In this document: positions 1,831 through 52,279 of the stretch, piece by piece
Layout: every line of letters starts with the position of its first letter
Position numbering within the stretch: the stretch's first letter is position 1
NCBI GenBank assembly: GCA_965202585.1
Contig: OZ241830.1
Location: 38,874,001 to 38,938,000 of the forward strand
Source: Thalia democratica
Lineage: Eukaryota
Length of the DNA: 64,000 bases
Reading direction: 5' to 3'
Program-made: the position numbers and the translations under genes
Notes under the pieces: model-generated
Seen by the model: only the letters and a program-made list of their open reading frames with translations
Told to the model about the DNA's origin: nothing
The model's database searches: none

Positions 1831-3801
1831 TATTTAAAAGTTTTTGTTGAATATTAGTATAATAAGTTAAGCAAAGTTATCTAGACTAATTTAGTTAAAA
1901 ACATGATAAAAACTTATGTAAAAACTTCTTACATCCTACAAAATTCAAGTGTATAAGTGAAATTTTTATTTGTCGAAATAAATAAATAGAATGTAAATTT
2001 AATAAACTACGGTTTGTCATAAAAAGTTCGGCTTAGCGATTTTATTGCTTAAGTTTTTTGAGAAACTAGGTTTGGGAGTAAGTAAGTATTAAACTTTTGA
2101 TTTAAAAGATATTTATAAAATAGGATATATGCGTACACTTCATACTATTTCATAAATCAATCTAAACTTTCTTAACCAAATTTATATTTTTCAATTTTTT
2201 TTATTTAATGCACTAAATGTAAAGGCTTTTAATACATCTTATTAAGCTTGAATCATCATAACTTATGCATTAAGATACTTCTTAAACGTCAGTTTAATTC
2301 TTAACTACTTATCTAAATTTAATTAAAACAGTCATTAAAAAGTTTATGTTTATATCTTATACAATTTACAAAAGTTAAAACGGATGCCATTTATATTAAG
2401 ATTAAGCTTAAAAGTACTGTTTAAACTCAATGAACATTTCTGAATTTTCTATTTTCTATAGTAAAATTTCTTTCAATTAGTTGATACAGGATACAAATTA
2501 ATTCAAAATTACCTTAAATCTTTCCTTCCAGCACAGTATATTTTTCTCTATTGGATTTCTTTTTCTTACTCGTAATTAATTATTTTGGAAGTTATACTTC
2601 TAAAATTGTAAAAGAAATTTTATTCAAATAGAATCTTAATTAATTGATGTGATGTTACCTTCTAACTTGTATAAAACTACTTACAGAAAATATTGTCTTA
2701 GTCTAAAAACGTTCAATGGAATTCTTTTGAGCAATTCAAAGAATTTTTTGTTGTGTTTATAGCCAAACATTAAGTATTAAGCAAACATAGCAATGTAATA
2801 TTCATTTCTTGCAAGCAATATTTTTGAAAGATTTTAAATATTAAACACTTTAAAAACTCAAATTCTGGCATAGCATTAAAAGTTTAATTAGGCTAATTTT
2901 AAACTCATTTGTAAATAAATAATTTTTATTTTAGTTAGTAATAAACTAGAGTTTTAAAGATGTTTATTCCTACTTACATAGAATTTGACAGTTTAAATTG
3001 TTTGCTGTAAAATTAAATTGTTGTTTTAAAATTTTAGAGAGAACTACATTTAAAACTCAATCAAACTGTTAAAAAATATTTACCAGAAATATCAAAAAAA
3101 AATCTAAGGTTTTTCTTAGAGAAGCTATTACGGTGAAAATTTATTTTTAATAAAAGGCTAATACTCAACAAAAACTAGTAAAAACTTCAAAACTTTTCTT
3201 TCGAAAATACAACAGAAGTTAAAAATACTGCTGTCAAAAAGTTAGCTATACTGGTTTTAGGAATTCAATTGAAGGGCAAGTTTTTGAATTTCACAAAACA
3301 TTTACTTTATTAGGGACCAAACGTGCGACCAGCCGCTTTTCTCACCGACTTCAACTTGACAAAATTAATAATGTCTGGAAAATAAAAATATAAAGTTCGC
3401 CGACAGACGTGTTAAGAGAAGCGTACGTGCCAAATAAAGTAGCAACATTTTTTTTTCAAGTTTAAAACAATTATATTGTCCAGTTAAAAGGCTTCATATT
3501 TTTTTTTCGGTAGACATTTTTGGGCAGATTGTTATGAAAAATACTTAAAATTCTAAATGACAATACTTATGATATTGTTATTAAGTTCGTTTGCATTTTT
3601 ATTATCTCATTAGACTTATACAATCAATATACTTTATTTTTACTTTTTGTTGAGAAAATTTAGATATTAGTTTTTAATTTACTTTATTTAATAATGTATA
3701 TGCTACTAATTTTATGTATATTGAGGTGTTATGTTATATGTTTTGTGTTTTCGCAAAAAAAGACTTTAAAAATAATACTTTTATACTTGTATTTATTAAA
3801 G

Positions 3802-3908
3802 CACTGATTGAAGTTAAGAGTATAGACGACAATGGAATTGTCACTTTGAGAGGATTGCACGCCAAACTGTATGTATGTGTTGGAGAAAAAGGAAAAGTTA
3901 AAGCTCAA
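3802..3908 (+). CDS. FGF: FGF paralogue A, exon 2 (107 nt; (x)LIEVKSIDDNGIVTLRGLHAKLYVCVGEKGKVKAQ)
   Basis: Bounded by attaaAG| and |GTgaga. Same length and phase as exon 2 of copy C (42645-42751), with 7 differences of which 6 are synonymous. Contains the FGF core motif LRG..LYxC..xG. Confidence 0.93.
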
Positions 3909-6900
3909 GTGAGAACAAAACTTTTTTTTTACAAACAACTGTTGAAAAGTTTTAAAAATACATAACTCTTTTTTTTTTGTCTTCTGTACTTATTTAAACG
4001 TGTATTACTAATAAGTACGTTTTTGAATATCTGATATTTCATTTAAATATAGGATTATTCTTATTGTTTTAATTTTTTTTTACAATTTTTGTAATTTTAC
4101 TGCTAATCTTAGCCTAATTGTAATTAGAAAAATTTAGTTTAGTAGATAACTCTTCAAAAAGCTCATAGAACCTTAACTATTTATCATAAAAATTAAGTAA
4201 AAAACTATACACTTTCAACTATTTTTAAAAGCTGTACTTGAGTAAGTAAACCTGCCTAAATTTTTTTTTGTGAAAAATTTAAAGTTTGTTTGTATAATAC
4301 TCAAAAAAATACTTTTACCAAGAGTAATTAGCTAATTTTACTGTCAGTTTTGACAAATCACTAAAAAAAAGATTCAGACATCAAAACAACAATTAGACAA
4401 ACAAGCAAACATATACGGCAAGGAACATAGTTATTGTTACGGTGTTTGCCTTTTATCTTTCAGGGACTCTGATTAACGTTTTTACAAAAATGGTGAGCTT
4501 TTTATCGAGGTCAAGCAGAGTTTAATAGACAAAATATTCTTGGCCGCCGCATATTCTCGTTTGCCTATGTCCCTTAATTGGTAATGAGTTACGCTTTTCC
4601 TTTTCGTATCAGAAATATTATCTGTAGCAACCTTAAAAACCATCAAAATGAATATAAAATTTGTTTTGTTTTTATGCGATTTGTTTAAACGACCGTCGGT
4701 AAGCTTTGTTGAGGTTTGATTCTTCAATGGTTCTTGCTGGTTCAAAAATTGAATCAAAACAGATCATAAAACGAGTAACAATTAAAAACATGACGTGTAC
4801 ACCATGCGGCTAGTGTGACGTCACAGACAATGTTTTTGCTTGACTTGCAATTAACTTTTTGGCGACAATTTTTTCACAATCAATCACACCCTTCAATGGA
4901 ATATGACTGCGCACTTATTATTGTTGTTATTACCAAAATATGTAGAAGTATTCGCCTCGCTATTTTCTTCTTTTTTGTTTGTGCTGTTTTGTTGCTTTTT
5001 TGAATGTTCAACCTCGGTGTAAATTTGTGTCATAGCTTTATATCTTGATTGACTTTTTAAGTTCCTTAATACGCTTTATTGATTTTCTATTATAAGCAGT
5101 TAAAAATTCAAGAAAAACAATATATCTATTTTATAAGTATTAAATACTTTTGTACTTTAAAAGCTGAGTGGTAAAAAATATTTACAAAAAAAAATTGATA
5201 AAAATCAAGTTACGGTGATTTTAAATAAAATTTGGCGGAACGTTTTATTTTGTATTAAAAGATAGAACTAGAATCGAGCTCAGTAAAATGAGCATGTTTT
5301 TGACATAGCCCATCGCACTGATATGTTTAGCATAGAAATTTCGTTTGTTAAATGGTTTTGTTTAAGCTTTGCCGGTTAGTTAAAAAAAAATCGGTATGTT
5401 AAATTTTGTTAGTATCGTTTCCATCTATTTTAAGCAGTTTCATTTGAGCTAAACTTTAAGTATTTTAGTGTTTGAAGTTTAGTATGATATATTTTAATAA
5501 TGTGAATTTTACTCTGCTCATTTTATTTGATATCATTTAACTTTAGTTTTTAGCTATCTTTCACCACTAATTTTTATTTGTAGTGATTTGAATATCACTT
5601 TGTGATGTTATAAACAAAACACTTTAAATATACAAGAGATTTATTTATGAAAGTTCACTAGTTTATACATTATATTAAAAAGTTGTTAGGTCTATGAGAA
5701 AAAAAAAAGTTAATCAAAACAAAGGAAAACTTATAACCACAATATCACTCTTTCACATTGCTTTCAACAGGCCTACTAAGAAATCATTTTCTTGGCACAG
5801 ACTTAACGTTGTACAAACTACGTTCAAAAATTCACAGGTGCCCTAATAAATATACGACGACTATATGGCTAAACTAAACTTTGATTTTTTAATATTAACA
5901 CGTGTTTAGTAGCGTTTAGTTGTCAATGCTCTCAAAACAACAGTTGGTGTAAGTATGTCTGTAACCCTGTATAATATTTACCATACTCATAAACTATTAT
6001 AACTTACTTGTTTGTTTGTTTAATTATTGAATCTATAACTTAGATAACTATTAGCGCAAAATAAACTTAGTCTATCAAGCTGTTACTACAAATAAGAACT
6101 TATTTATAATTAAATTAGAATTCCCTACGTCATCTTTAAAAAAAATACTCATTATAAAAACTTACTCTAAAATAAATATTGTAAGCTAATTGGTTTTTAT
6201 TGAACTAAATCAGTTGCTCGATACGATACTCAGTTTGTTTAACTACAAAAAATACTTGTTTAGTTATAAAATGATGTCATTGACAGAAGACGAATGAAGA
6301 TCTTCTTAGAAACAAGTCGGCTTTCCATAAAAGGTGTTTGGTGCGTCACGACACTGGTGTTTCAGATCCTGCTTGAGTAATTAATGACGAATAAACACAA
6401 CGGGTTTATGTAAACCGCTAAAACCATTCATGCAGAACTGAAGTTTCCGACATTGCGAATTAAAATTGCCTCTATTTTTTCGTCAAGCCCGCCAGTTAAT
6501 TGTGTTTAATTCAATTACTAGCAGTTTCTATGGCAATATGCGTTCTTGGGGTTTTTTAATTTTGTGAAAGGTTCTGTTGTTAAGTTGATACTGGTGGTCA
6601 CAAAAATACTTCTATGGTCTTGTTTGTTCTTTAACATCGAAACTTGTGAATAAGTCAGCAGCTTGGCCTGTAACAAGCTGTTACATAAAATTCATGTGTT
6701 GAATTTTAAATCAATTTTACCGCTTAAAATTTAATCTAAAAATTATTGCTAAAAGCTATAGGTCAATACAGACCTCAAAATACCAGTAACGTTGTTTTGA
6801 GTTATCTGAAACTGATATGTTTTACTTCTTACAAACGTTTACCCACAGTTTGTAAACTTAAACTGTTTTTTAAAGAAAACTTGTTTACGCTTTACGTGTT

Positions 6901-7016: not shown

Positions 7017-7216
7017 GAGAACTATATCAAGGCAAAGTGCACTTTTCAATCAACAGTGAGAGATAACAAACAAACTACCTACAAAGCACTTGCAAAATGC
7101 GGAAAGCGTAGATGCAGGGGATACTTGAATCTCAACAAACAGGGTCAAGTCAGGAATGTTTCCAAACACAGAAGTTATCTTGATCAACAGACACACTTCC
7201 TTGATAGAATACCGAG
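7017..7216 (+). CDS. FGF: FGF paralogue A, exon 3 (200 nt; ENYIKAKCTFQSTVRDNKQTTYKALAKCGKRRCRGYLNLNKQGQVRNVSKHRSYLDQQTHFLDRIP)
   Basis: Acceptor taacAG| in phase 0 joins exon 2 in frame. C-x-F and T-H-F-L FGF core motifs present. Colinear with 46233-46432 without indels. Similarity to copy C stops just after AG|GTTTGAA. Confidence 0.92.
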
Positions 7217-7398
7217 GTTTGAATTATCTCTGAAACATTATCATTTGTTGTTAAGACATAACCATAAAGTGAACGTTATTAAATTAAAAATCAGCTATTC
7301 GAATGTTTACATTAAAAAAATATAGTTTATCAAAAACTTATACTAAAACTAAAAACATTGCTAGCAGACAATAATTTCTTTAAAATGTTTAACTAAAG

Positions 7399-7540
7399 AA
7401 AACGCAGAAGAAGACGGCGGAGAAAGAGACGACACATTCGCTCGCAAAGGCATAACTTCTCACTGGTTGGAGTCTCAACGCAGGACGTTAAATCTGCAAT
7501 CAGAGAACACAGAGCTCTCCTCTTCTCCCTGCAATCCTGA
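7399..7540 (+). CDS. FGF: FGF paralogue A, inferred terminal exon 4 (RKRRRRRRRKRRHIRSQRHNFSLVGVSTQDVKSAIREHRALLFSLQS*)
   Basis: A phase-2 join from CCGAG|gtttga to actaaAG|A is in frame. The same frame and the same TGA occur in copy C. The length difference from C is 24 nt and the only substitution in the shared part is synonymous. Not in the ORF track. Confidence 0.82.
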
Positions 7541-10500
7541 TATTTTTTATTTTTTTTTTAAACTTTAAGCTGGCTTTAGCTCGACACACATTTTAAGTTC
7601 ACGGTGCAAGAAACAAAGTGGTGACGTAAATAGCTCAGTGAAGTAATTTTCTATAAATTATAAAATTTTAAAGTCTTTTGTTTCAAAATACTTTAAATGT
7701 TTTTTCAATTAATTTTAGAAAGTTTTTCTTATAATTACGATTTATAAAACAATAAATTACAAAATTTAGTTAAGATTGCTTCATTGCAAGTTTTTTCTTG
7801 CTTTTGCTAAAAGATTATAACATTATTTTAAGTACATTTTCGGTGCTGGTCACACCTTGACGTAAAGTAAAATATTTATCTTATTTAATAAATGAACTAG
7901 ATATTTTTCTGCGTTTTTATTATTATTATTTGAAAATTGACATAGAACACAACTTTGTGCTCTTAAATTAATTTAAAGATCTAAATAAATTAAAAAAAGA
8001 TAGTTGATATTTGTAAATTTTTTTAATTTTTTTTATTGCATGTTATTTCTATTTATTTACAATAACTACTTAACATAATTGAAAAAATTCTGTTTGACAT
8101 TTCGTTGTATTTACGAGTTATATTCTTTATTGAGGCAGGTGAATAAAAATAGAGTGAAAAAAAAAAAAATATCATATACTTGTAAATGAAAATTAAAGAT
8201 AGCAATTAAGAGAAAACATTTTAAATTGTTTTTGGAAACTATTTAATTAAAACGATTTTAATTATATAGTTGTGATTAAAACTTAAATTTGTTAAGTATT
8301 GTTTTAAGATTGACAAAACAACTTTTTGAATTTAAAAAAAATATATCACACTGATAAACAACGTTTCGATTCATTTTTGAAAAAGTCAAAAGTTCTTGTG
8401 CTTTTTAATTAATATTTAAAACTATTATTGTATGTTTCCTTAGTGTCAATCATATAAAAAGTATTTAACTCTGATCTAGAATTTTTTTGGTTTTCTCGTA
8501 TTTTATTTCAACTCATTTTTTTGAATAAATGAATTTACAGTAGTTTTTTTTTTATTACATTTTACTTTTTTTTACACCGTATGTTTAAGTTTAAAAAAAA
8601 TTTTTCTTGTATTAAAAAGCTTAAAATTTAAAGAAAAAACATACTTTTGTAGTGTAAAATCATAATAATCATAAAAACTTAACTTAATGCTTTCACATAT
8701 AAAGTTAAAGGTTAATTCAGTACAAAAATGTTAAGTTTTTAAAAACTCAACAAAAGATATACAACTTTAGAACGACATAAAGATTTACAGAATATAACAT
8801 AGTACCTTTATACTAACAAAAACCTATTAACTAAGTGCAGTTTTGTCCAGATACTTAATAGTTTTACGCATTCAGTATCTTTTATAATAAATTGTTAATA
8901 ATAGGTGACTATATATTTATCAATAAAAATTTCTATCTGTAAACATAAATCTAAAATGTTTCAAAGAATTATTTTTTTACTGTTTTTGTTATATTCTATA
9001 TCTTTAATATAAATCAACGCCTTTGAACTATAGCTTAGATTTTAATCATTTATTTAGTCATTTGTATATAACATTATATAAAATATCGTTATAAACTATA
9101 CTTTTGAAATCTTTAATTTAAAAATTAATTTTTGCTAGTTTTCTGATGTTTTACTTATGCTTAATAATTTTTCTATAAACTAATACTTAATGTTTTAAGC
9201 TTTTTTTTTATTATAACAAGTTTTACTTTTATTTTGATATAAAATAATTAAATATTTTTGCTTAATTAAAACTTAGTTTAAGCAGTTTGTTTGCATAAGG
9301 TTTTTAAAATATATGATTTTATAAAAACCAGTTAAATTGTATCAACTCAGTTTTTTATAGGTTTTTTTTTGAATAAAAAAAATACTTCTTATAACCTAAA
9401 AAAAAGTGATTTTAAAACTAGTTTGTAGTATCTTTATCATAAGTTCTAAGTAAACAACTGTAAACACGCAAAAATGTTTATTTTGTGTATTTATGAATAA
9501 ATGTTATAAATAAATGTTTTTAACTTTCTTACTTAAGTATAAACACATAGTTAGACGATTAGTGTTCCAATAAAAAGTCTTACAGTGCTTTTATGATAAG
9601 TTATTTTAGTCTTAAGTTTACATTTCAACTAGAAAATTTTAAGTACTGACTTCAACACATAGCAACTTAAAAATCCCTAAGATAATCCGTTTCTAAGGCG
9701 AAAGTATGATAGATAGAGAGATCTTTGCACAAATCATTTAAAAAGCTAAAAATTTCACTTCTTCACGCCGTGTTGGTTGTGGAAATGGTAATTATGGCAA
9801 CTGCGCAATAAAATCCGACACTTTACTTATCAGGTGACATTTTCAAGATCAAACCAGGGATTACGTTGATGGAGAAGCATCATTTGCATTGACGTTTGTC
9901 AAACGTGTAATTCAGGTAGTAATTCTCAGTAAGTTGCTTGATAAAAGTACAGGCTTAAGTTTTTCAAGCTTCTTTAAGCACAACTTACTTAAAAGCTTAT
10001 ATTTATTAAACCATTTTTATATAGTTCCTAACGGTATTTGTAAAACTTGAATGAGTTTACCAATTTATTTAGTTTTTGATTTTATTTAAGTTTTAAAACT
10101 TTTGAACTTGTTTTTTTTTTTTGCATCTCTTCAAAAATTTATTTAAGTACATTACCTGAAAAACTATTGAATATTTTAAAAAAAGTACTAGTAAAAGTTT
10201 ACTGTTGTTACTATGTTTTAAATCAAATATACATACTTTCCCGGTTAGTATGAAGTCAACGAGTCTCAGTTTACAAATTAACTACTACTTTATATCAAAG
10301 CTAACTTAATAGACACAAAATGATTGAAAATAGACAAAACAGAAGTTCAAAAATTGCATAGTTAAACTGATGAGACATGTGAATTCTAGCTAAAAACATC
10401 ATAGTTTATGCTAAAAAGCAAATTTAATCTCAAGAACTTTTAGTTGTAAATGAAGCATCAAATTTAGCGTCTTTATTCGAAAATTTATTTAATAGAAACT

Positions 10501-15125: not shown

Positions 15126-15441
15126 GTGTTAAAGTTTGAACAAGTTACTTTCCGTGGTCTATGATTTATATCATCTATTCGAAAACTTGTAAAATCAGGG
15201 CAAGAGCATAAATGTGTAAATACAAACATTTAAGTTGACCCTTGGTTTTAACTTGTAATTTTCATTATGTCTAGCAGCTGTTACAACTAACATTCTTTGA
15301 AACGTGGAAAGAATTTTCTACTCACTTATTTAGATGTAAGCTGGTGCACGAAAGTTTTAGGTTCGTAACAGCACAAAAATATTAAATACAGTAGCATTTA
15401 AATTTGTAAGATGGGTAATTTAAAACTTTACAGATGCAGTT

Positions 15442-15753
15442 GTCACGTAAATCTAGTTGCCATGGAAATACGTTGTTGCACGCAACCGGTAAATGTCATT
15501 TCTTAGCAACAAGAGTTGCATAATAATCAGAAGGCTTTTGATTTCTGGGCACGGCCCTTGCTCATGTGATTAGCGACAAACTGAATGTCGAACATGTGAA
15601 GGTTTTACAAACCCCTCATTGAAAACTTTTCGGTAAGCACGCGATACGGTTTGAAAAAAAAAAACTGCCATAGAATTTTATCAAAAATAGTATTTTTTTA
15701 TAAGTTAAACTAAACAAAATCCTGCAGTAATTTTCTATTATTTCCTATAAGCT
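15442..15753 (+). repeat. Duplicated non-coding block W2, copy 1
   Basis: About 14 differences over the first ~215 nt versus 51972-52279. More diverged copy at 23699-23900. Confidence 0.95.
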
Positions 15754-23698: not shown

Positions 23699-23900
23699 GT
23701 CACGTAAACTTCGTTTCCATAGAAGCTTATCGTTGCATGCAAGGGATGAGTGATTTTTCATAGCAACAAGAATTGCAGTCGGGCTCGCCTTTGATTTCAG
23801 GGCACGGCCTTTCTTACGTGATTAGCGACAATCTAAGTGTCGAACATGTGACGATTTTACAAACCCCTCATTAACGACTTACTCTTAAGCACGCGATGCT
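23699..23900 (+). repeat. Duplicated non-coding block W2, copy 2 (diverged)
   Basis: Shares GTCACGTAAA, TAGCAACAAGA, TTTGATTTC.GGGCACGGCC, GTGATTAGCGACAA, TGTCGAACATGTGA and AAGCACGCGAT in order. Confidence 0.9.
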
Positions 23901-30323: not shown

Positions 30324-30462
30324 GAGAATAGGCAAAGTGCACTTTTCAATCAACAGTGAGAGATAACAAACAAACTACCTACAAAGCACTAGCAAAATGT
30401 GGCAAGCGTAGATGCAGGGATATTTAAATCTAAACAGACAAGGTCAAGTAAGGAATGTAACC
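30324..30462 (+). pseudogene. FGF exon-3 pseudo-exon (unit B)
   Basis: Acceptor taatAG|GAGAAT retained. Net 7-nt deletion near the 5' end, a 1-nt deletion in AGGGGATAT, and loss of the 3' third of the exon. No recognisable exon 1, 2 or 4 partner. Confidence 0.92.
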
Positions 30463-38900: not shown

Positions 38901-39419
38901 TAACTACAGTTTTAACTGAAAATTCTGCTTAACCTACAAACTCAAATCGATTTTTACAATATATAGAAAACAGTTTTTTTTTTTACACTAATGATGATTA
39001 AAGCATGTTTGAAACCATAATTATTTTTCATTTTGTAAGCAAGACTTTAGTTTTTAACATTTTAAAATACTTACTTTAACTAATTTAAAATGTAATATTA
39101 ATTAAGTTATTTCAAAAGGCCGTATTTATTTTAGTTTTCTTTTGACTGATGAGTTTATGTTAGCTAACATCAATATTTTTTTGTACTTTGCAAGATTCTA
39201 AACACGTAGAAACATAGTGGATGTAAAAATTTAATCTTTTTAAGTCAAGAATTGAAAAAATTAGTTGATTTATTTTTAATTATACATGTATTGAAAAATT
39301 TATTCCTAAAGTTTTGTTTTAACACAAAAAATTATTTTAAAACTGTTGTTAAAGTCAGTTAGTTACATACGTAAATTACCTACATAGTTTTGTCTTAGAC
39401 TTGTGGCTTGTTTATCTTG

Positions 39420-39748
39420 TGAAAACTTACGCAAAGCGCCGGTGGCAGGTGAAATTTTGAGAGAAGTGAAAAACGCCCGAGGCGAGAGAGCAGGGATGAA
39501 AAAACTGACGGGTGAAATAGGAAGCTACAAATTTGATTAACAGCCAAATATTCGACATTTCCATGTCAAACGCATGTGATGCTGTTGTTTATACAACAGT
39601 TAATTATTTTTTTATTCTTTAATTAGTTATTTGCTTCACGTAGTTTTAATATAAGATTACTTATTTTTTCTGCAGTTTTTGCTTTACACTGTCAAATAAC
39701 TTTACTAGAGACGAAGATTTTTATTTAAAGTTTGAAAAAATAAACACA
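39420..39748 (+). promoter_or_regulatory. Putative proximal promoter/5' UTR of FGF copy C, with a splice acceptor at 39674-39675
   Basis: Locally GC/CpG-richer stretch 39420-39600 and a strong ttttttctgcAG acceptor about 70 nt before the ATG. The TSS cannot be determined. Confidence 0.4.
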
Positions 39749-40436
39749 ATGACATCAGTCCACTCCAAAGCAAGCTGCCTGTCAACAATGGTGCAGCAAC
39801 AAAGTATAAAACTTCTGACGTGTGCCAATCAATGGTGTCAAAAATGTGCCAACAATGTTAAACACTCCTCTAATGACTCCACGAGCAAAAAGTCTCATAA
39901 ACCAGTTCTTCATTCTAAAAGTCACTTTTTTCGACTCGCAGCTTTTTTGCTCTTCCTTTTCATAGCTCTGTTGTGCTGTGCACCGACTGCTAGTGCGAGG
40001 ACTCCCACCGCTCTCCGCTCCCTGGCAACTGCCAACTCTACCGTGGCAACCGATGTTCATCGAAACCGCTCGTTGCCAACTAGAACCAAGTCTGGGTTAC
40101 GAGCTTCGCCGAAGGAGCGACCCCAAAAAATATTAAGAAAAAGGAGAAAGAAAAATTACCCAAGAAAAAATCAAAAAAGTAGGTCAGTAAAACCCAAGAA
40201 GGCCAACAGGACAAAAAAGGGAAGGGGCAGGAAAAGGAAGAAAAACAAGCGCAAGAACCGTAAGAACAGAAAGAAAAGTAATAAAAGCACTCCGAAAGAG
40301 TCATCAGTTTGGGGAGACGCGTATGTGGATACTAAAATCAGCAGAATTTACAGCAGATCGGGAAATTCTTTTCATCTAGCAGTGCTGCAGAACGGAACAG
40401 TAAAAGGGGAAAAGAGTGACGAAAAATCTGATTACA
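39749..40436 (+). CDS. FGF: FGF paralogue C, exon 1 (N-terminal extension, hydrophobic signal-like segment at aa ~60-83, Lys/Arg-rich region, start of FGF core RIYSRSGNSFHLAVLQNGTVKG)
   Basis: ORF 39749-40441. Donor TAC A|GTTAGT in phase 1 joins exon 2 in frame. RIYSRSG..HLAV..NG.V.G matches FGF beta1-beta3. Confidence 0.92.
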
Positions 40437-42644
40437 GTTAGTTGCATGCATATTTAATTATATTGTTTGTGATTATAACGATTTAAAGTATAAGTTAGGC
40501 TTACATAGACTTTTTATACTAAAGAGTATTTAAGAAGCTTAATTTAACATTACACTGCCAATATAATTTTAAATAGTCCACTTGGCTTATATATTACGAC
40601 TTAATCACACTTCATACTGTTACCTTATTAAAGTTTACAAAATTTTAAAGATATAGTATTTAGAATTTGTAATGAAAAACGTTTAATAGTTATAACTACG
40701 CTTATCGTGTTTCATTTAATGAGATGATAAGTTTGTAAAAGCTTTTATTTAATTTTTGAGAAAAAGTAATAGTTGTGTATACTCGTAAAGTGAATATCAT
40801 TGTTATTTTTAAGTAGCATAATAACTAACTTTTTTGAATACATCTGTAACTTGTACATATATGAGACAATATGTATAAAAATATACAAATTATTTATTTT
40901 TTTAATCATATATTAGTCTAAAACTCAGCAAAATTATATACAATAAATATTCTACTGTTTTAAAAAGCGTATAAACAACGTAATACAATTAAAAAAAACC
41001 TTACGTCTAAGAAAGTCTAAACTGTTGTAGTTTATTTTTAGAGTTGTATTTTATTTTGGAAAACAAATATTGACGCAGCAATAAAGAAAGCAAAGCAAGC
41101 TATTTATACACATTATTTTAGGTTAAATCTTAAACAAAGAAAAGGAAACACCGTTTGTATCATTAAGTACACAATCAAAATGAAACTAGCAGTTTACTTT
41201 CTCACCAAACCACACCAAAAAAGTTGCCTTTTTATAAAAATGATACTGAAACCTACACCAGTCTTATCACTAAGCACCGCTATCTATCAAAGCGAAAACG
41301 AATCAAATTGACATGTCGCTTGTGTGCACAAGCGTCACTTTTGTGAACGATTAACCCTCCATCCCCTTACGGAATGACGACACGTTTCGAGTGTAAATTA
41401 TCTGTCTGCGCGTGTGTTATGCTGAAACAATCAACAAACATTCGATATTGACAAAATCTTAATTGTTCAGGTGAACTTTTGACAATATCGCGCAGGAATA
41501 AGTTAGAACAGTGTTACCTTTTTGACCTACCAAAAAAAACTGTATTTTCAAGGATTAATTACACTATCGTACTAAAGGTAAACATACCAACATTTTTCAC
41601 TTAGTTTACTTCGTTTTTCAATGTTTAAAATTTAGTAATTGATAAAGCCTGAGTTGTGAAATGAAACTATTTTTTTCCACTCATCTAATCTATTTTCCCA
41701 CAAAAATGCAGATGTTGTTAGGCGTCGTTTTGAATGTCAATTTTTATAGACAAAACAAATCCAAATGCAATATGCGTCAGCTAAATTAGGTCATAAAATA
41801 TCTAGCGTTTACTATTTGACTGTTTGTAGGCTTTGAGAATTGTGTTTTCTGCGTTGTTATAAACGTATTTTTAAAAACAAAACAAAGCTTTTTTTCATAT
41901 AACCTAAATGAATCAATCTAAATCATACAACAATAGTTGAAACTAACAGCTAATAAAAAGTTTTGTGGTTTTTTTCAAAATAAAAATTAAAGTTTCAAAC
42001 GAATTGATTAAATAAATAAAAAAATACTTTGTTCTGTGAAAGACTACGGAGCGCAATGTGGTAATTTATTAAGTTAGAATGCTATTATCACTAAAATTTA
42101 AAGTAAGTACAAACTTTTGTGCTTGGTTTTGTAAAAAAAAGCGTCTTTGAAACTACTTATAGTACTTTATCACATAAAAGCCTGTCGTTTAACTTTGTGT
42201 CAATCAAGTTTCACAATGTTGCTTAAGCAATAAAATTTATGAAATTCTAAAGATATGAAAGTAAGGTTTTGTGTTTATAGAAAAGCATTAAAAGATTTGT
42301 AAACACAAACGAAATAAAGTTGTCTTGTAGGACATGCAGTTTTACAGAGATTAATAGCTAACAGTTTTTAATTTAAAATAAAGTTTATAGTTTACAAGTG
42401 TATAGCCATTAAAATGAAAAAAAAACTATATAAAAAATTATATTTTAAAGTTTATCAATTCATTATTAGAAGATATTTAAGTTTTAGTTTTAAGTATAAT
42501 CAAAAAATTTTTATGTTTAAAAATGTAATTTTTTAATGCTGCTATCATACCTTTATGAAAATCTATATGTTAAAAAAATTTTGCGACTTCCATTTTTAAG
42601 TTTTTACATTTTTATAGAACTTTAAAAAAAACATACTGTTTTAG

Positions 42645-42751
42645 CACTGATTGAAGTTAAGAGTATAGACGACAATGGAATTGTCACTTTACGAGGATGG
42701 CACGCCAAGTTGTATGTATGTGTGGGAGAAAAAGGAAAAGTTAAAGCTCAG
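42645..42751 (+). CDS. FGF: FGF paralogue C, exon 2 (107 nt; (T)LIEVKSIDDNGIVTLRGWHAKLYVCVGEKGKVKAQ)
   Basis: Bounded by ttttAG| and CAG|GTAAAA. Phase 1/0 is the canonical FGF core intron pattern. The 107-nt length and YxC..CxF cysteines recall the FGF8/17/18 group (from recalled knowledge; needs a phylogeny). Confidence 0.95.
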
Positions 42752-45700
42752 GTAAAAATAAAACATTTTTCTGTCATATTTGAACTAAAAAAAATATATA
42801 TATATAATGTAAAACAAAAATAAAGTTTAAGTATGTTGGGTTTTATCTGTTCTTATATAAATGGTTTTAACTTTAAACGTTAACATAAAAGTGTTTAAAG
42901 TCAACCTTATTTTGTTTAGTATTAGAACAACTACTTACACTTTTTTCTTAAAACTCACAAATTCCAGCAACCACTTACGTCACGTGTAAATTTGATTACG
43001 CGCAACGCACGTATGTCACGTCACAAGGGGCCAAGTTCAAATCTGCTTGATATTTTTCTGTACCTCTCAATGAAATTATTTCTAAAAGTAAACACATTTG
43101 AAACTCTTTAATTAAACACGCTTTTTGATTTATAATATATCACGGCTCCTTTAATATTGTTAAAAAACAACTAATACACAATCAATATACCGTCGCAGCT
43201 TTTTATTGGTAAGAAGTGTTAAAAAACATAGTATATTGTATGTTGTGTGTATAATAAAAAAAACGTTTTACCAGCTATTTGTTTATTCTACAACTTAACT
43301 TCAATAACAATAAGTCTTTACGTTAGTTAGATGAAATCATATTTTGATCTTTTTCGATGCGTTTGGGAGAACAGCTTTTACAAATCATGTAGTTATTTCT
43401 GATTAATCCTTTTGAATAAAATTCGTTTAATATATAGGTAATCTTGTTGTTATACAAATTATTAACTGACTTATCAAATATGATATGTTTAAATGGAAAA
43501 TAAACATTGACTAGGAATTTTTATTCGCTGTTTACCTTATAATCGTCAACAAGAGTTAAGATTTTTTCCAGTTTTTTTTAGAGATTTATATTCTCTATAC
43601 AAATCTGCAATTGCACATAAAACCTATAGAGAAGTTATTAAATAGTATTAAAAATAATTTTATTTAATTTAGCTTGAAGTTCATGTAAGTTACTCTGCTG
43701 GCAAAATTTGCAATCAACTTTAAAAACTTCCTATTACATAATACATATTTTTTTGGCTTTGAAAGTCATATGATGTTTGAAATTTTTAAGTATATTTCAA
43801 AACCTTAACATAAACTTATGTTTGTAGTATACAAAAAAGTAAATTGTTGCCAAAAAAAATTATAAATAAATTAAAATACATTTTTTGTTGTAAAAATAAA
43901 AAGGAATATTTTTTGCTAGTTTTTTTCAAACTCAAGTTATTATAAAAACAGTTTATCCTTATTATTTAAAACAAAAACAATTTTTAAGCACACGAGAAAA
44001 CGTAATAATTTTATTCATGACGTCACGACAGCCTGACAAGTCATTAAACTCGAAAAGTCAACAACTGGCTCAAATTCTTCAAACTGCGTTTTTCCAACTC
44101 CGATGGGCCCTAACAGCGGCCCCTCAGGGAGACTCGCAACTGTTGCCATAAGAACGGGACGCATTTTCTCAAGGTCAAGCGAGTTTAGGAGCTTAAATGT
44201 GTTTGACAGCCCACTTTCTCTTATTCGGTAAATAAACGTCCGTCCCTTGTTAAATTTTTCACTTTCTTTTTGTCGTTGGCTAGAGGGGAAATTATCAAGA
44301 AAATGTTTACTCGTGTTTGTGATGCTCGTTTGTTTACACTTGCAGAAAAAACCATGTGTTTATTTGACAGGCCATCAAAAGATAAAACGAAATTGGGCAG
44401 TATAAAATCGATAATGTTATGGCAAATAACAACATGCGGTCACTATTTTTTCTTTCACTTGCATTTAACTTTCTACCAATTGTTAGATTATGTCTTTTAT
44501 CTTATACTTCTAAAGCTGTTTTTGAATAACTTTTTACAATTTTTTTCTAATCCTTATTCGGCTTAACTGATTTTAATTTTCTGAGTTAAATAACATCCGT
44601 CACTGTTGTGGCAACTTCTGTTGTTTTGTTGTTTGTATACGACAAAAAGCAGACAAAACGTCATCATATTCTGCTTAAAAAATAAACAAAGGTCAGAATA
44701 GTGAAAAGCTTATATCGACAAACCGCAATAAATTTACCTCTGTCAAACTTTTAATTCACAAAAACAGAAATTAAAAAAAACTTTTTAGCACTGAAAAAAT
44801 GTCATTAAGCTGAAGTGTGTTTATTTTAATCGTGTTAGCACAAAACAAGGTCAAGAGTGTTTTGATTAAATTTATAAAGGTTTTTACATTTGGGCACCTA
44901 TCAATTAAGTTTTAATATAAAAATAAAGAAAAAATAGGAATTTGACACAGCAAAAAAATATTTTTAAAGTATTTAATCAAAGTGTTACTAAACTATAAAA
45001 AAAAGTAAAGCTGTTTTTTTAAGTTCTAAGAACAAAAACTAACTCGAATAATAAAGTTGTTCAGAAATATTTATTTTTGAGTTAACCTTTGAATTGTAAA
45101 AAGAATCATTAAATAAATTATTTAAAAAGTAAAATAAAAACCAAATACAAAACAAAAACTGTTGTGGAAATTTTATAAACTGATACAAAACTTTTTACTA
45201 CAGCCAAATTAAGCACATATTAATTTTATGAGCTGTTTTAAAGCGCCTTTTGGGAAAATATACCGTGTGAATATAGCTATAAAGAGAAGCCAAATTACAT
45301 TAGTACGTTTTACTTTTATTTACAGGCAATCCATAAGCTGAAGTAAAGTTCACATAATTTGTATTTGAAATAACTAACTGTCTATAAAAATTAAAACGTT
45401 AAGACAAAGGATTTTAAATGATAAACTAGTCTTTAAGTTTGTACTAAAACTTTTAAATTTAGCTGTCTAGTTAAAAGAACTTGCAATTCATAACTAGTTA
45501 CATACCTAACATAGATAATAGTCATTACATTTAAATATCGAAAGATACTTTTAATTAAGAGCTACCAGTGTAATAGAAAAATAAATAAATATAATTTAAC
45601 TTTTATACTTATATACTGTACTTTATAATTTTATTTCTATTTTAGAAATAGCCTTTTAAGAACATAATTTTTGCTTAAAATATAACTAATTTTGGTACAA

Positions 45701-46232
45701 TAACGAAATTAAAGTTGTGAAAACAAATGGTTATTCACAGTACTACATATTTTTTTAATGCTTAAATCTGTTTATCCTGCTTTAATTATCAGTAATTACA
45801 GAGGTAAATATGCTTTTTAAAATACTCGTAACTATTTAGTTTTTTAATGTACTTTTAGTTTTATTTGTAGTTTGCTTATGATACTAAAGTTCTACATTGA
45901 AGAACACCTTTCTTCATCCAAAAATTTTTAGTTCTTTTTTATGTTACTTATTTAGTTATAGCAATAAGCTAAGTTTTATATTTGAAAATAAAAACCTATA
46001 AATATAATAAATTTATCTTTTTTTACTACATTATAACAGTTGGATAGTTTTGTAATAACTTGATAATTATTTTAAAATACTTAACAAAATAGTCTCGGTA
46101 AAAGCAAAAACGCTTTAAGCTGCACTTCAAAGAGCGCGGTTTTCTTTTAAAAGTTAACAAATATATTTATTTAAACTTGTCTTTGAATATGAACAATATT
46201 TTGTTTTTAAACTTATATTTAAACGTGTACAG

Positions 46233-46432
46233 GAGAAATATATCAAGGCAAAGTGCACTTTTCAATCAACAGTAAGAGAAAATTCACAAACTACCTACAA
46301 AGCACTAGCAAAATGCGGTAAGCGAAGATGCAGGGGATATTTAAACCTGAACAGACAGGGTCAAGTCAGGAATGTGACGAGGCACAGAAGTTATCTCGAC
46401 CATTTGACTCATTTTCTCGATAGAACACCCAG
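46233..46432 (+). CDS. FGF: FGF paralogue C, exon 3 (EKYIKAKCTFQSTVRENSQTTYKALAKCGKRRCRGYLNLNRQGQVRNVTRHRSYLDHLTHFLDRTP); reads on to TAA at 46448 if intron 3 is not spliced
   Basis: Acceptor gtacAG| in frame with exon 2. FGF core C-terminal motifs present. Donor CCCAG|GTTTGA is at the same position as in copy A. Confidence 0.94.
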
Positions 46433-46602
46433 GTTTGAACTGTTCTAACACTCTTTCATTGTGATATAATATTTTTTTTAATTTTTCTGTTAACTGTTTT
46501 TTTCATGATTATAATAAGTTAGCTATCAATTTAATCCTAAATTAAAAATATTAAGGGTTAAACTTTAGTAACAAATATATCTAACTTAAACAAACTAAAA
46601 AG

Positions 46603-46720
46603 GATACGAAAGAGACGACACACGCAAAGGCATAACTTCTCACTGGTTGGAGTCTCAACGCAGGACGTCAAATCTGCAATCAGAGAACACAGAGCTCTCC
46701 TCTTCTCCCTGCAATCCTGA
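46603..46720 (+). CDS. FGF: FGF paralogue C, inferred terminal exon 4 (RIRKRRHTQRHNFSLVGVSTQDVKSAIREHRALLFSLQS*)
   Basis: The phase-2 join CCCAG|...actaaaaAG|G is in frame, with a ctaac branch-point-like motif upstream. Total CDS is 688+107+200+118 = 1113 nt = 370 aa plus stop. Matches 7399-7540. Confidence 0.82.
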
Positions 46721-48854
46721 TATTTCTCAACATAATTTATACTTTCTTTTAGTTCAAGCTGGCTTTAACTTATTACTAGCTTAAAGTTCGTGCTAACAAG
46801 TTCTCAGGAAAAAAAAAAACTAGATGTAAACTTTGTTTAATAGAAATTAGAACATCCTAAAATTCTTCAAAATGGGTTTTACTGATTTTCAACTTTGGGT
46901 ATAAAATCTAATTTAAATTTTACTTTTTTTCAAAGTGTTACTGAAAACAGAAAACAAATCTTTTTAATTTAAAATTAATTTTTGCTTAGACTTATTTAAA
47001 AATGTAATAAAATATCATCAGTAAACACAATTTTTCATTTTTAACTTTATTTTCTAGTTTAAGGGTGCTGGGTTCACCATTTATTTGATAGTATTTATAG
47101 TTTTTACATTTCTTATAAAAATCAGATGTTGCTTTTCTTTAACTTTAAATTTTTACGACGATTGTGAAGCATTTTTAGCTTTTACATACAAGATTATGAA
47201 TAACTACTTTTTCTGTTGTTTAAAATCTTTTAAAAATGGAAATGAAAACACTTTGGTTTGTTAGGTCAAAATCTATTTTAGTTTTTAATTAGTGGTAGAC
47301 TTTTTTATCATCATATGCTTACTAACATATATATAAATAACCGTTTTTGACACTGCAGTGAAATATCAACTTAAAAGTTGTGTTTTTGGCACAAAAATAC
47401 AAATTTATTTCATTTTTTCTATTTTTATTTATGTGAAATAGGTACAACATATTAGCTAATTTTAAAACTGTTCATACCTTATGGATTTCTATATTTAATT
47501 TGCCAAGTTATATATTCATTTTGGTTTTTAATCATCGTGCTATAAAATACTAATTAAAAGTGTTTTAATATTTGAAGCTTGTTTGAAAACTTATTGAAAA
47601 TATTTCATCATCGTTTTAGTGGTCAATCATAAGAACACAATATTTATCTTAATAAACGTTTTTCACACATTTGCTTACTACCATAAAAATTAACACTTTT
47701 TGTATCATAAAAATGAAGTTTCGAAGTTATAATAAGAAATATAGAGTTTAGAAATGAGATTTGTATCAAGATAATAACTTGACTTATAATTTGTTTTTGT
47801 AAAACATTTTTTATTCACAAACAAATGAAGAACTATAGTTAAGCGAAGATCCTAGATGTTTTATAATCGACTATAATTATTTATTTATTTAAGCATGTAG
47901 GTTATGAAGTAAACTATTATATCACTTAATATTTATTTTAAAGTTGTTACATAGCTTCAGTATTTTATTATTTATAAGTATACTCTATAATAGTTATATC
48001 CTATTCAAAGTAAAACTATATATATATATATATATCTAACAAATCATTTATTGTTGCATTTATTTTAAGAAAAGTTTTTACAAATATATTTTTTTAGTTA
48101 TAACTTATGAATAATGTGTAAAACTATATTCTGTTTATAATCTATATTTATTAGTTTAAAATAAAAAGATAAAACTTGAAATCTACATGGCGAGACAGTT
48201 TAAAGATTCATTAAAATACTTACTAAACTACTTATCGACTATTTCTAAAGAATGTACTAAGTGACTAGTTCCAAAAGAAAACTTTTTTTTTTAATATTTA
48301 TGAAATGGATATTGAGTATAAATTCATAATAACTTACAAAATGTTAATTTACCTAAGATAACAGTAGCATATCTCAGTATAAAATGAATAAACAAAAGAT
48401 AAATATACCGACTAGTATTGTTGAAAACTAAATGAATAACACCAAGGTGTGTGTATCGTGACGTTTGAACAAAAACTTAAAATTGTATTTACAATTACAA
48501 CTTTTTTAAGATATATAACAAAATACATTTCATTTTCTTTAAATTTATTTTAGAACTTTCGTAGTAAGGCTCAAAAGAAATAGTTTCTTACTGAATCGGA
48601 ATGAATACAAATTGAAATAAAATCATACTGAAGTTTAATGTTTTAAAATATAAAATGACGTAACAATCAAATGTTAAAAATTAAATAAGTGTTTATGCTA
48701 AATAAATTTAGTAAACTAATAAAACTCGTTAGAATTAAAAACAATCTAAATAAACAAGCGATAAAAATTAAAATTATACTTCAAATAAAATTTAAAATTT
48801 AACAAGAAACTAATTACTTTAAAACTACTAATATAACGATTTAAAAAGTCTGGT

Positions 48855-49457
48855 TTAGTAAACGAACTTTTTCTGCTTGCATATACTGGGCCTTAAAGAT
48901 TGAATACATAAGGCTTCCAGAATATGCAGTTGAAAAGAGTTCTCCGCTCTCACTAAGACTGAAAAACTGTCCTTTTTATAATTTTTAACACACTCAGGAT
49001 TGTCCAACAAATGTTGCCCAATCGCCGAGAAGTATTTTTTCGTTGGTTTCTCAGAACGGCAATCAAACCACTTTTTCAAGACTTTCGGAACATGTTGATC
49101 GATTCTTACATGATACCTTTGAGATGCTTTTCCCACGTAGTCACTACCACAGTGACAACTAAATTTATAGATGATGTTACTTTTTTCATGGGTTGGAGAA
49201 ACATCTTTGTAAATTCCACTTAGAGGACGATCAGTATACAATACTGTTCTTAAACGAACAGAGCTTAAAACTTGGTTTATTTCATCTGAAATTTTCTTTG
49301 AAAACCTCTCAGAAATAATTCCAAGGTAAGGAAGTTTTAAGTATACTGAACACTTCTGAGGGCCAATCATTTTTAAAGCTGTTGAACTTCTAGCTCTTGT
49401 TATAACTTTCGAAACTAAGTTACCTGGATAACCAAGGGAAAGGAAAGTAAACCTTAA
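48855..49457 (-). mobile_element. 5'-truncated Penelope-like retroelement: post-RT linker plus GIY-YIG endonuclease
   Basis: The frame extends upstream of the listed ORF as LRFTFLSLGYPGNLVSKVI (GYP motif). It continues with YLKLPYLG, NIIYKFSCHCGSDYVG (GIY-YIG with CxC), RIDQH, SAIGQHL and LEALCI...P.ICKQ, all typical of PLE endonuclease domains. No RT core remains. Confidence 0.92.
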
Positions 49458-51125: not shown

Positions 51126-51971
51126 AAATAAGTCGAAGTTTGTTTAATTAGCTCGATGGCATCCCTGAACAAAAGCTTCCTATCAATTGCCATTTTTAAA
51201 TATTTTCCATAAGTTTTGTTTTCCATAAGTTTTCATCTTTAGTTGGTTGTTTTATTTTAACTTTGCAAACCTGTCAAACTTTAAAAAAAAAAATTTAAAT
51301 CAGCGTTTACAACTTCTTACAACTACTATATATACAGAAACGAAAATAATTAATTGAAAATTTATAAACTTTTTTAGATCTAGGTTTAACCAATATCAAT
51401 TTTTTAAAGCAATTGGCAGTAAAAAAGGGTCAAAAATAATCTCAACTTTTGCCTGCTTAAATTAGTTAACAAACACAATTCGTATACAACTACAGCTCAA
51501 CCTAAATGATAAAAACTTCTAGTACTAACTATTGGTTAAATATATTCCTGCTAAGTTAAGAAAATATATTTTTTTGGAAAAATATAGTAATTGAATTTCA
51601 TTAACTTGTTCAAATTGTGCAACAACGTTAAAAATTACAACCTATAACCTCGATAAACACAGTTTTATGACGTAACAATCGACCTGCTGCGTTTATCGGC
51701 TGCTGACTATGAAAGGCACCTGTTCGCGACTTAAAATATTTTCATCATTCGATCATCAGTTTAATTATAATTTTATAGGAGCGCCGCTTTTCCCAGATTT
51801 TCGGCTATGATCGTAACAAAGTTTTTTTACAAGTTTTGCATGCAAAAGTGTGTATTTAGCCAGCTATTTAGTAGTAATCCAGCGCAGATTTTCGTAAAAT
51901 CTCAAGGCTAAATACAGAAGCACTTGAACTTAAGGAAAGGGCGTTTTTAAACTCAACGCACAGAAATAGCC

Positions 51972-52279
51972 GTCACGTAAATCAAGTTGCCATGGAAATA
52001 CGTTGTTGCACGCAACCGATAAATGTCATTTCTTAGCAACAAGAGTTGCATAATAATCAGAAAGCTTTTGATTTCTGGGCACGGCCCTGCTCACGTGATT
52101 AGCAACAAACTGAGTGTCGAACATGTGAAGATTTTACAAACCCTTTATTAAAAACTTTTCGGTAAACACGCGATAAGATTTGAAAAAAAAACTGCTGTAG
52201 AGTTTTATCAAAAATAGTACTTTTTAATCAGTTAAACTAAAAAAATCCTGCAGTAGTTTTGTATTAATTCTTATAAGCT
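51972..52279 (+). repeat. Duplicated non-coding block W2, copy 3
   Basis: Near-identical to 15442-15753. Confidence 0.95.

Follow-up and report, generated by a model that had tools for sequence, protein, structure and literature searches.

A very probable fourth, terminal coding exon encodes a conserved basic tail in FGF genes of the pelagic tunicate Thalia democratica

In the FGF genes of Thalia democratica, the reading frame that carries the end of the FGF core can be followed past the last core strand into an apparent stop codon, raising the question of whether the protein ends there or whether splicing carries it on into a block of sequence further downstream. We addressed this question in a window of 64,000 nucleotides (C6:38874001–38938000 of an 802-Mb assembly; 25% GC). 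The original prediction for this stretch had proposed that a hidden fourth exon encodes a basic tail in two paralogues, here called copies A and C. We consider it highly probable that positions 46603–46720 and 7399–7540 are a genuine fourth, terminal coding exon, spliced as proposed, since splice sites, frame and stop are conserved, substitutions are patterned as in coding sequence, insertions and deletions are distributed differently in exon and intron between orthologues, and contigs of a relative are already spliced at this joint.

For copy C, the gene model comprises the following features, in window coordinates.

39749–40436, plus strand: exon 1, ending in phase 1 at the donor gttagt; the cDNA boundary 715/716 falls at 40436.
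42645–42751, plus strand: exon 2, 107 nt of FGF core, with acceptor ttttag and donor gtaaaa, ending in phase 0.
46233–46432, plus strand: exon 3, 200 nt, completing the FGF core as far as THFLDRTP and a further 2 nt, ending AG/GT in phase 2.
46433–46602, plus strand: intron 3, 170 nt, GTTTGA...AAAAAG, including the apparent stop after RFELF.
46603–46720, plus strand: exon 4, 118 nt, with the junction Arg, IRKRRHTQRH, the conserved NFSLVGVSTQDVKSAIREHRALLFSLQS and TGA.
46721–47011, plus strand: probable 3′ UTR, its extent inferred, with the block AAGCTGGCTTTAAC... and AATAAA at 47006.

Exon 1 begins with the ATG, encodes a hydrophobic segment (residues 60–78, then TASA/R) and a long Lys/Arg-rich stretch, and reaches into the FGF core, of which it holds the first strands. 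The 3′ end of exon 3 reads CCCAG/GTTTGA, and reading through the donor yields RFELF followed by TAA at 46446–46448. The acceptor of intron 3 is caaactaaaaag followed by G (AAAAAG/G, 46602/46603), and in copies A and C alike the phase-2 junction of exons 3 and 4 creates an Arg codon. Joined in this way, the four exons amount to 1113 nt and 370 residues with no internal stop (length and stops checked by script), in agreement with the protein of about 370 residues that had been predicted. Database searches used the exons one by one. The exon 4 acceptors lack a pyrimidine tract, as do the other acceptors of these FGF genes, and a search of the genome with intron 3 of copy C as a possible repeat or introner returned only the intron itself. 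Past the stop, the first 70 nt of the 3′ UTR are 85% identical between copy C and its orthologue. Within this region, a block (AAGCTGGCTTTAAC...TTAAAGTTCG; window 46745–46790 and 7566–7581, and L020, the contig of the orthologue, ~7880–7925) is near-invariant between copy C and its orthologue and partially present in copy A; a separate conserved UTR block, TTCAGGGTATTTCCCTGT, is found in the E-type genes described below.

Copy A shares this layout, and a relic of a further copy lies between the two.

C6:38871707–38872372 (locus L028), plus strand: copy A exon 1, ~1.6–2.3 kb left of the window start.
3802–3908, plus strand: copy A exon 2, 107 nt.
7017–7216, plus strand: copy A exon 3, 200 nt, ending CCGAG/GTTTGA in phase 2.
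7217–7398, plus strand: copy A intron 3, 182 nt, whose read-through would be an unrelated 37-residue extension.
7399–7540, plus strand: copy A exon 4, 142 nt, with the junction Arg, KRRRRRRRKRRHIRSQRH, a 28-residue core identical to that of copy C, and TGA.
30330–30461, plus strand: copy B, a frameshifted exon 3 relic with no tail block downstream.

Contrary to an earlier claim that no exon 1 lies near copy A, the gene is complete: its exon 1, left of the window, is a 226-residue open frame with 50% identity to exon 1 of copy C. The acceptor of its intron 3 is gtttaactaaag followed by A (7398/7399). What the prediction had said of the two genes can be read directly in the sequence: a phase-2 intron, 170 nt long in C and 182 nt in A, leads from AG/GTTTGA to an AG acceptor in frame, both tails end at the same TGA, and the length difference (142 versus 118 nt) is a multiple of three, its 24 nt being in-frame indels. 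The gapless shared part of exon 4 differs only at T7489/C46669 (GTT/GTC, both Val), the single synonymous substitution that had been reported. A genome search located the tail block at four sites, in every case 3′ of an exon 3: in copies A and C, in copy D, on the minus strand of the same chromosome (C6) ~34 kb left of the window, and in copy E, on a different chromosome (C7). In total, the genome holds four intact copies and one relic.

The surroundings of these genes contain other sequences of some interest. A non-coding module of ~370 nt lies downstream of both copies A and C (15383–15753 and 51909–52279, 86% identical), with a third copy at 23699–23897 (~75% identical); its conservation exceeds that of most intergenic sequence nearby. 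On the minus strand, 48858–49457 holds a 200-residue open frame that by eye resembles a GIY-YIG endonuclease module of the type found in Penelope-like retroelements.

We compared exon 4 and its flanks in six genomic copies, namely A, C, D and E together with an orthologue of copy C (contig L020) and an orthologue of copy E (contig L012, E-type), both on genomic contigs out of ocean metagenomes; L020 is collinear with window positions 38938–46889 at 76% identity. All six have their GT donor at one shared codon, followed by an AG acceptor and an open frame, with the stop position kept as well. The donor lies in phase 2, four codons plus 2 nt past the HFL motif of the final β-strand, and is followed by an intron of 182 nt in A, 170 nt in C, 357 nt in D, 167 nt in E, 231 nt in L020 and 218 nt in L012. 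In the frame set by the splice, every copy remains open for 38–48 codons up to a TGA or TAG, copy D having its TGA one codon later, and all indels among the six exons are multiples of three. With ~9% of random codons being stops at 25% GC, open frames of this kind in six copies are well beyond chance. The read-through peptides have only their first residues in common; they range from 5 to more than 30 residues, their stops are not kept, and the TAA that ends RFELF in copy C is lost in L020.

The encoded tails are 38–47 residues long. Each starts with an R-x-K/R-R motif, copy D included (RTKR, its poly-Arg run lost), and contains a 28-residue core with the consensus NFSLVGVSxQDVKSAIRExRALLFxLQS, in which the NFS sequon is invariant. 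In the E-type genes, the exon 4 acceptor is a tandem CAG/AAG/AAG (L007, the copy E locus, 1862–1873; L012 722–733), alternative use of which could add or remove one Arg codon.

Between copy C and its orthologue, exon 3 (89.5% identity) and exon 4 (88.7% identity) align without a single gap column, whereas the alignment of intron 3 has 63 gap columns and an identity of 72%. The ratio omega (Nei-Gojobori) of the 28-codon tail core is 0.04–0.17, with exon 3 in the same range, and three independent pairs together show 20 synonymous versus 8 non-synonymous changes in the tail core, distributed 7/0/21 over the three codon positions (P = 4e-7 under neutrality). The tail is under purifying selection as a protein. 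Searches of the tail against Pfam gave only sub-threshold noise, and its scores of 0.77–0.79 in the ESM Atlas are uninformative.

These data also bear on the possibility that conservation of the block is that of a 3′ UTR or another non-coding regulatory element, with the protein ending after RFELF and the open frame coincidental. Such an element would be in line with the 99% nucleotide identity of A and C across the block, against 85% across exon 3, and with conservation that runs ~50–70 nt beyond the TGA. Yet the pairs unaffected by conversion (see below) change chiefly at third codon positions with omega of at most 0.17, frame and stop position are intact in six copies with indels only in multiples of three, and it is the RFELF stop and the read-through peptide that are unconserved. 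Spliced contigs of a relative, moreover, translate through the junction. We therefore regard a non-coding element as extremely improbable, and a coding exon as the reading to be preferred.

A separate matter is why the tails of A and C are nearly identical. Between these two copies, dS is 0.81 in exon 3 versus 0.05 in the tail, while each of the two tails is 8–9 changes, mostly synonymous, away from the orthologue of copy C. In the comparisons of A with D and of C with D, tail dS is 0.59, equal to or above that of exon 3 (0.41–0.62). The simplest reading is that gene conversion homogenised the 3′ ends of A and C after the species split. Alternatively, the coding sequence might be under extra constraint at the nucleotide level, through an overlapping RNA structure or target site, as could be suggested by tail dS falling below exon 3 dS within the orthologue pairs (0.35 versus 0.64 for C, 0.28 versus 0.51 for E) and by the conserved 3′ UTR block that adjoins the tail. 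A sequence frozen in this way should, however, be frozen across orthologues too, where the A and C tails have instead accumulated their mostly synonymous substitutions, and the comparisons with copy D show no lowering of tail dS relative to exon 3; we find such a constraint very unlikely as the cause.

The A and C tails are therefore not independent witnesses to the exon, and the independent support comes from copies D and E and the orthologues. The original description of the exon as confirmed by two paralogues was thus weaker than it seemed, the two tails being homogenised. Along the genes, copies A and C are 91% identical in exon 2 (3800–3927 versus 42643–42770), 85% in exon 3 and 99% in the core of the tail, so that the tandem copies may have undergone conversion in patches. 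More generally, tandem paralogues made near-identical by gene conversion are poor independent witnesses.

Protein searches provided a view of the spliced product in a relative, in a cluster of three sequences (P0011, P0013 and P0014) that read ...THFLDRIPR-RRRRRRKRRRRHINIQRQNFSLIGVSAQDVKSAIREERALLFALQS and then stop. P0013 is encoded on contig L014 and P0014 on contig L013, both ending ...RALLFALQS before the stop; P0011 is from a separate assembly. Both contigs run from the 5′ UTR through exons 1–4 into the 3′ UTR with zero introns, exon 3 being directly joined to the tail. L013 820–1022 corresponds to exon 3 of copy E (L007 1498–1700) and 1021–1330 to L007 1866–2176, skipping exactly the predicted intron in L007 coordinates, while the remaining exon boundaries of L013 map to window positions 40436, 42645 and 46230–46432. 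The contigs derive from two sources (JGI and MERC) that we take to be Tara Oceans metatranscriptomes; should they be DNA instead, these contigs would represent processed retrocopies, still derived from spliced mRNA.

Use of the splice between exons 3 and 4 is thus shown in a transcript of the relative. Since L013 and L014 are E-type, with only 75–83% identity in exon 3, we infer its use in copies A and C from conservation. Two word searches for A- or C-type transcripts returned only exon 1 open frames on genomic contigs and the E-type cluster, and among the contigs of the three runs listed for a 7.1-kb query, all of unrecorded type, no GT-AG joint was found at the exon boundaries, the introns being covered as in DNA. 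A search for further relatives in a metagenome collection with P0013 as query gave no match, and the five matches of a degenerate DNA pattern encoding QDVKSAIRE were taken as chance, judging by the contig names.

Two further observations concern these contigs. L013 (~531–533) and L014 (506–608) differ by ~100 nt in the part of exon 1 that encodes the polybasic stretch, with a frame change in both, reflecting either a low-complexity repeat collapsed in assembly or true length variation. A contig of an organism designated B, covering 46289–46672, has six listed differing positions plus two indels in intron 3, and none listed in exon 4.

A rival reading is that exon 4 is an alternative terminal exon, such that a regulated short form, ending after RFELF through retention of intron 3 or polyadenylation within it, coexists with a long, tailed form. 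Intron 3 does contain ATTAAA hexamers (46541 in copy C; 7278 and 7311 in copy A), and FGF genes elsewhere vary at their 3′ ends, as in canary FGF13, where one isoform departs right after HFLPKPLK. ATTAAA is nevertheless common by chance at 25% GC, a short form would end differently in each copy, given read-through peptides of 5 to more than 30 residues with variable sequence and unconserved stops, and all three transcript-derived sequences represent the spliced form. We rate a regulated short form as quite unlikely. Together with the four further genomic copies and the coding substitution pattern, the spliced contigs of the relative bear out the original proposal of a real fourth exon encoding a basic tail.

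Pfam and structural comparisons place the tail outside the FGF fold. Exons 1, 2 and 3 of copy C cover positions 2–30, 34–66 and 69–124 of the 124 positions of the FGF profile PF00167; with the domain divided among them, each scores just below the gathering cut-off on its own, and the spliced P0011, P0013 and P0014 all carry the domain. Among PDB chains, 37 FGFs matched at E <= 1e-3, in alignments that end at THFL(D/P)R. Profile and alignments both end at exon 3, and the β-trefoil is therefore complete there, the tail being extra to it. P0014 was modelled with AlphaFold 2 at a pLDDT of 94–98 in the core, and Foldseek matched the model to FGF9, FGF4, FGF8, FGF2 and FGF13 with TM-scores of 0.8–0.9, normalised to target length.

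An exhaustive HMMER search returned 99 hits, the best full-length ones (86–106 bits) being FGF-NA1 of Phallusia, FGF-NA1 of Ciona, a protein of Clavelina and a marine sequence; non-tunicate FGFs reached at most 66 bits. In a quick maximum-likelihood tree of 36 rows, in which P0014 stands in for the window genes, these four form a clade with P0014 (SH-aLRT 100) apart from FGF13, FGF9/20 and FGF4/5/6; the top hits entered included no member of FGF19/21/23. The window genes belong to the tunicate FGF-NA1 group, which, like the open-ocean origin of the related contigs, fits a pelagic tunicate. FGF-NA1 is the seventh Ciona FGF and has been tentatively linked to FGF19/21/23 (PMC3420111, PMC11733497), the label 'Fgf-NA1-19/21/23' having been used with low support noted (PMC11733497). 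FGF19/21/23 genes are recognised by orthology, through phylogeny or synteny, and by a Klotho-binding tail. In our searches, FGF23 and FGF19 chains scored 28–35 bits and FGF9, FGF20 and FGF13 chains 46–48 bits, so that these scores show no special affinity to FGF19/21/23.

We used Ciona intestinalis NP_001106724 and XP_078481615, Phallusia mammillata CAB3245899 and Clavelina lepadiformis XP_076806920 as ascidian comparators. Like these, the window genes encode a long N-terminus, which includes a hydrophobic segment and, directly before the β-trefoil, a polybasic block: in copy C, the Kyte-Doolittle maximum lies at residues 60–78, and residues 101–195 are 42% Lys/Arg. A layout like this N-terminus is also visible in P0017, P0018, P0019 and P0029. 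Two introns within the core, the ancestral Fgf arrangement (PMC11733497), and a basic tail after HFLP are shared as well.

The difference lies behind the core. FGF-NA1 of Ciona and Clavelina has three coding exons, with a tail of 75–100 residues within exon 3 (three tblastn blocks, the last reaching the C-terminus), whereas the window genes have a phase-2 intron after the core and a tail of 38–47 codons as a separate exon; the motif NFSLVGVSxQDVKSAIRE is not recognisable in the ascidian tails. This is a difference of gene structure only and gives no ground for excluding the window genes from the FGF-NA1 clade. With the tails of the ascidian orthologues inside exon 3, the extra intron and exon are specific to the clade of A, C, D and E, and the pelagic lineage gained the intron, or else the whole terminal exon, before the duplication of the four paralogues. 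The sister marine sequence P0018 adds no date for the intron, as its genomic contig reaches exons 1 and 2 only, and no closer orthologue of P0018 was found in this genome. A distant FGF gene of the same genome (C1:15679956–15685891; L011, L031), markedly GC-richer than its surroundings, has an exon 3 in which the core is followed, with no intron between, by the Lys/Arg/Glu-rich tail THFLILKDTQKEKKEKKKRRRKKNKEAKN and a stop.

A C-terminal tail on a separate exon is also known from the FHF genes (Fgf11/12/13/14), where the core-flanking intron cfi2 comes right after the last core strand (PMC11733497); the canary FGF13 isoform mentioned above diverges about one codon from the intron position of the window genes. 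FHF genes are recognised by the lack of a signal peptide and by both core-flanking introns, cfi1 and cfi2 (PMC11733497). We rejected FHF membership for the window genes: the tree separates them from FGF13, a hydrophobic segment and AxA are present, and cfi1 is absent, exon 1 being uninterrupted from the ATG into the core, which leaves a cfi2-like intron alone. By our reckoning, cfi2 of human FGF13 lies ~2 nt from the position of intron 3 here and differs in phase. An independent origin of intron 3 and cfi2 is more likely.

In the order of its parts, the tail region resembles FGF19/21/23, above all FGF23, with a core, an R-x-K/R-R motif and a conserved tail; FGF23 itself consists of a core, an R-x-x-R cleavage site and a functional C-terminal tail. 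The FGF19/21/23 tails, in contrast, lie within the last canonical exon, while that of the window genes is an exon of its own. In the AlphaFold 2 model of P0014, the tail contains two helices (residues 186–209 and 214–232) with a pLDDT of 66–88, a moderate confidence obtained from a shallow alignment.

Put together, these features suggest the following course of expression. The pre-mRNA is very probably spliced from the phase-2 GT donor to an AG acceptor 167–357 nt downstream, replacing a short, unconserved read-through (RFELF and stop in copy C) with a tail of 38–47 residues. This tail consists of a basic stretch with R-x-K/R-R and a conserved 28-residue C-terminal peptide bearing the N-F-S sequon and the two predicted helices. 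The protein would then enter the secretory pathway; it is probably secreted, judging by the hydrophobic segment of exon 1 (residues 60–78) and the AxA that follows. The basic flank could bind heparan sulfate, or form a proprotein-convertase site that separates core from tail in the manner of FGF23, or both. The motifs thus hint, if weakly, at a linker that is convertase-cleavable and/or binds heparan sulfate, followed by a functional C-terminal peptide. A bolder version, which we regard as unlikely, would make the tail a regulatory module of pelagic tunicates, in which a convertase site splits the FGF core from a glycosylated, helical peptide of ~30 residues that binds a co-receptor, is auto-inhibitory or is released. 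If true, this would be a functional parallel to FGF23 in a tunicate FGF that has been tentatively tied to FGF19/21/23.

For annotation, the consequence is direct: models based on open reading frames or on three-exon homology would lose a selectively maintained tail of 38–47 residues, the correct product being a protein of ~370 residues from four exons. The fourth exon is a lineage-specific modification within an FGF family already known from tunicates, and not a new kind of system. In evolutionary terms, a terminal coding exon and its intron have been gained in an otherwise very conservative FGF gene structure, a gain that is dated before the four-fold duplication in the pelagic tunicate lineage since the ascidian orthologues retain the three-exon form. 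The conserved tail and the convertase-like site beside the core offer a handle on the processing of the little-studied FGF-NA1 group.
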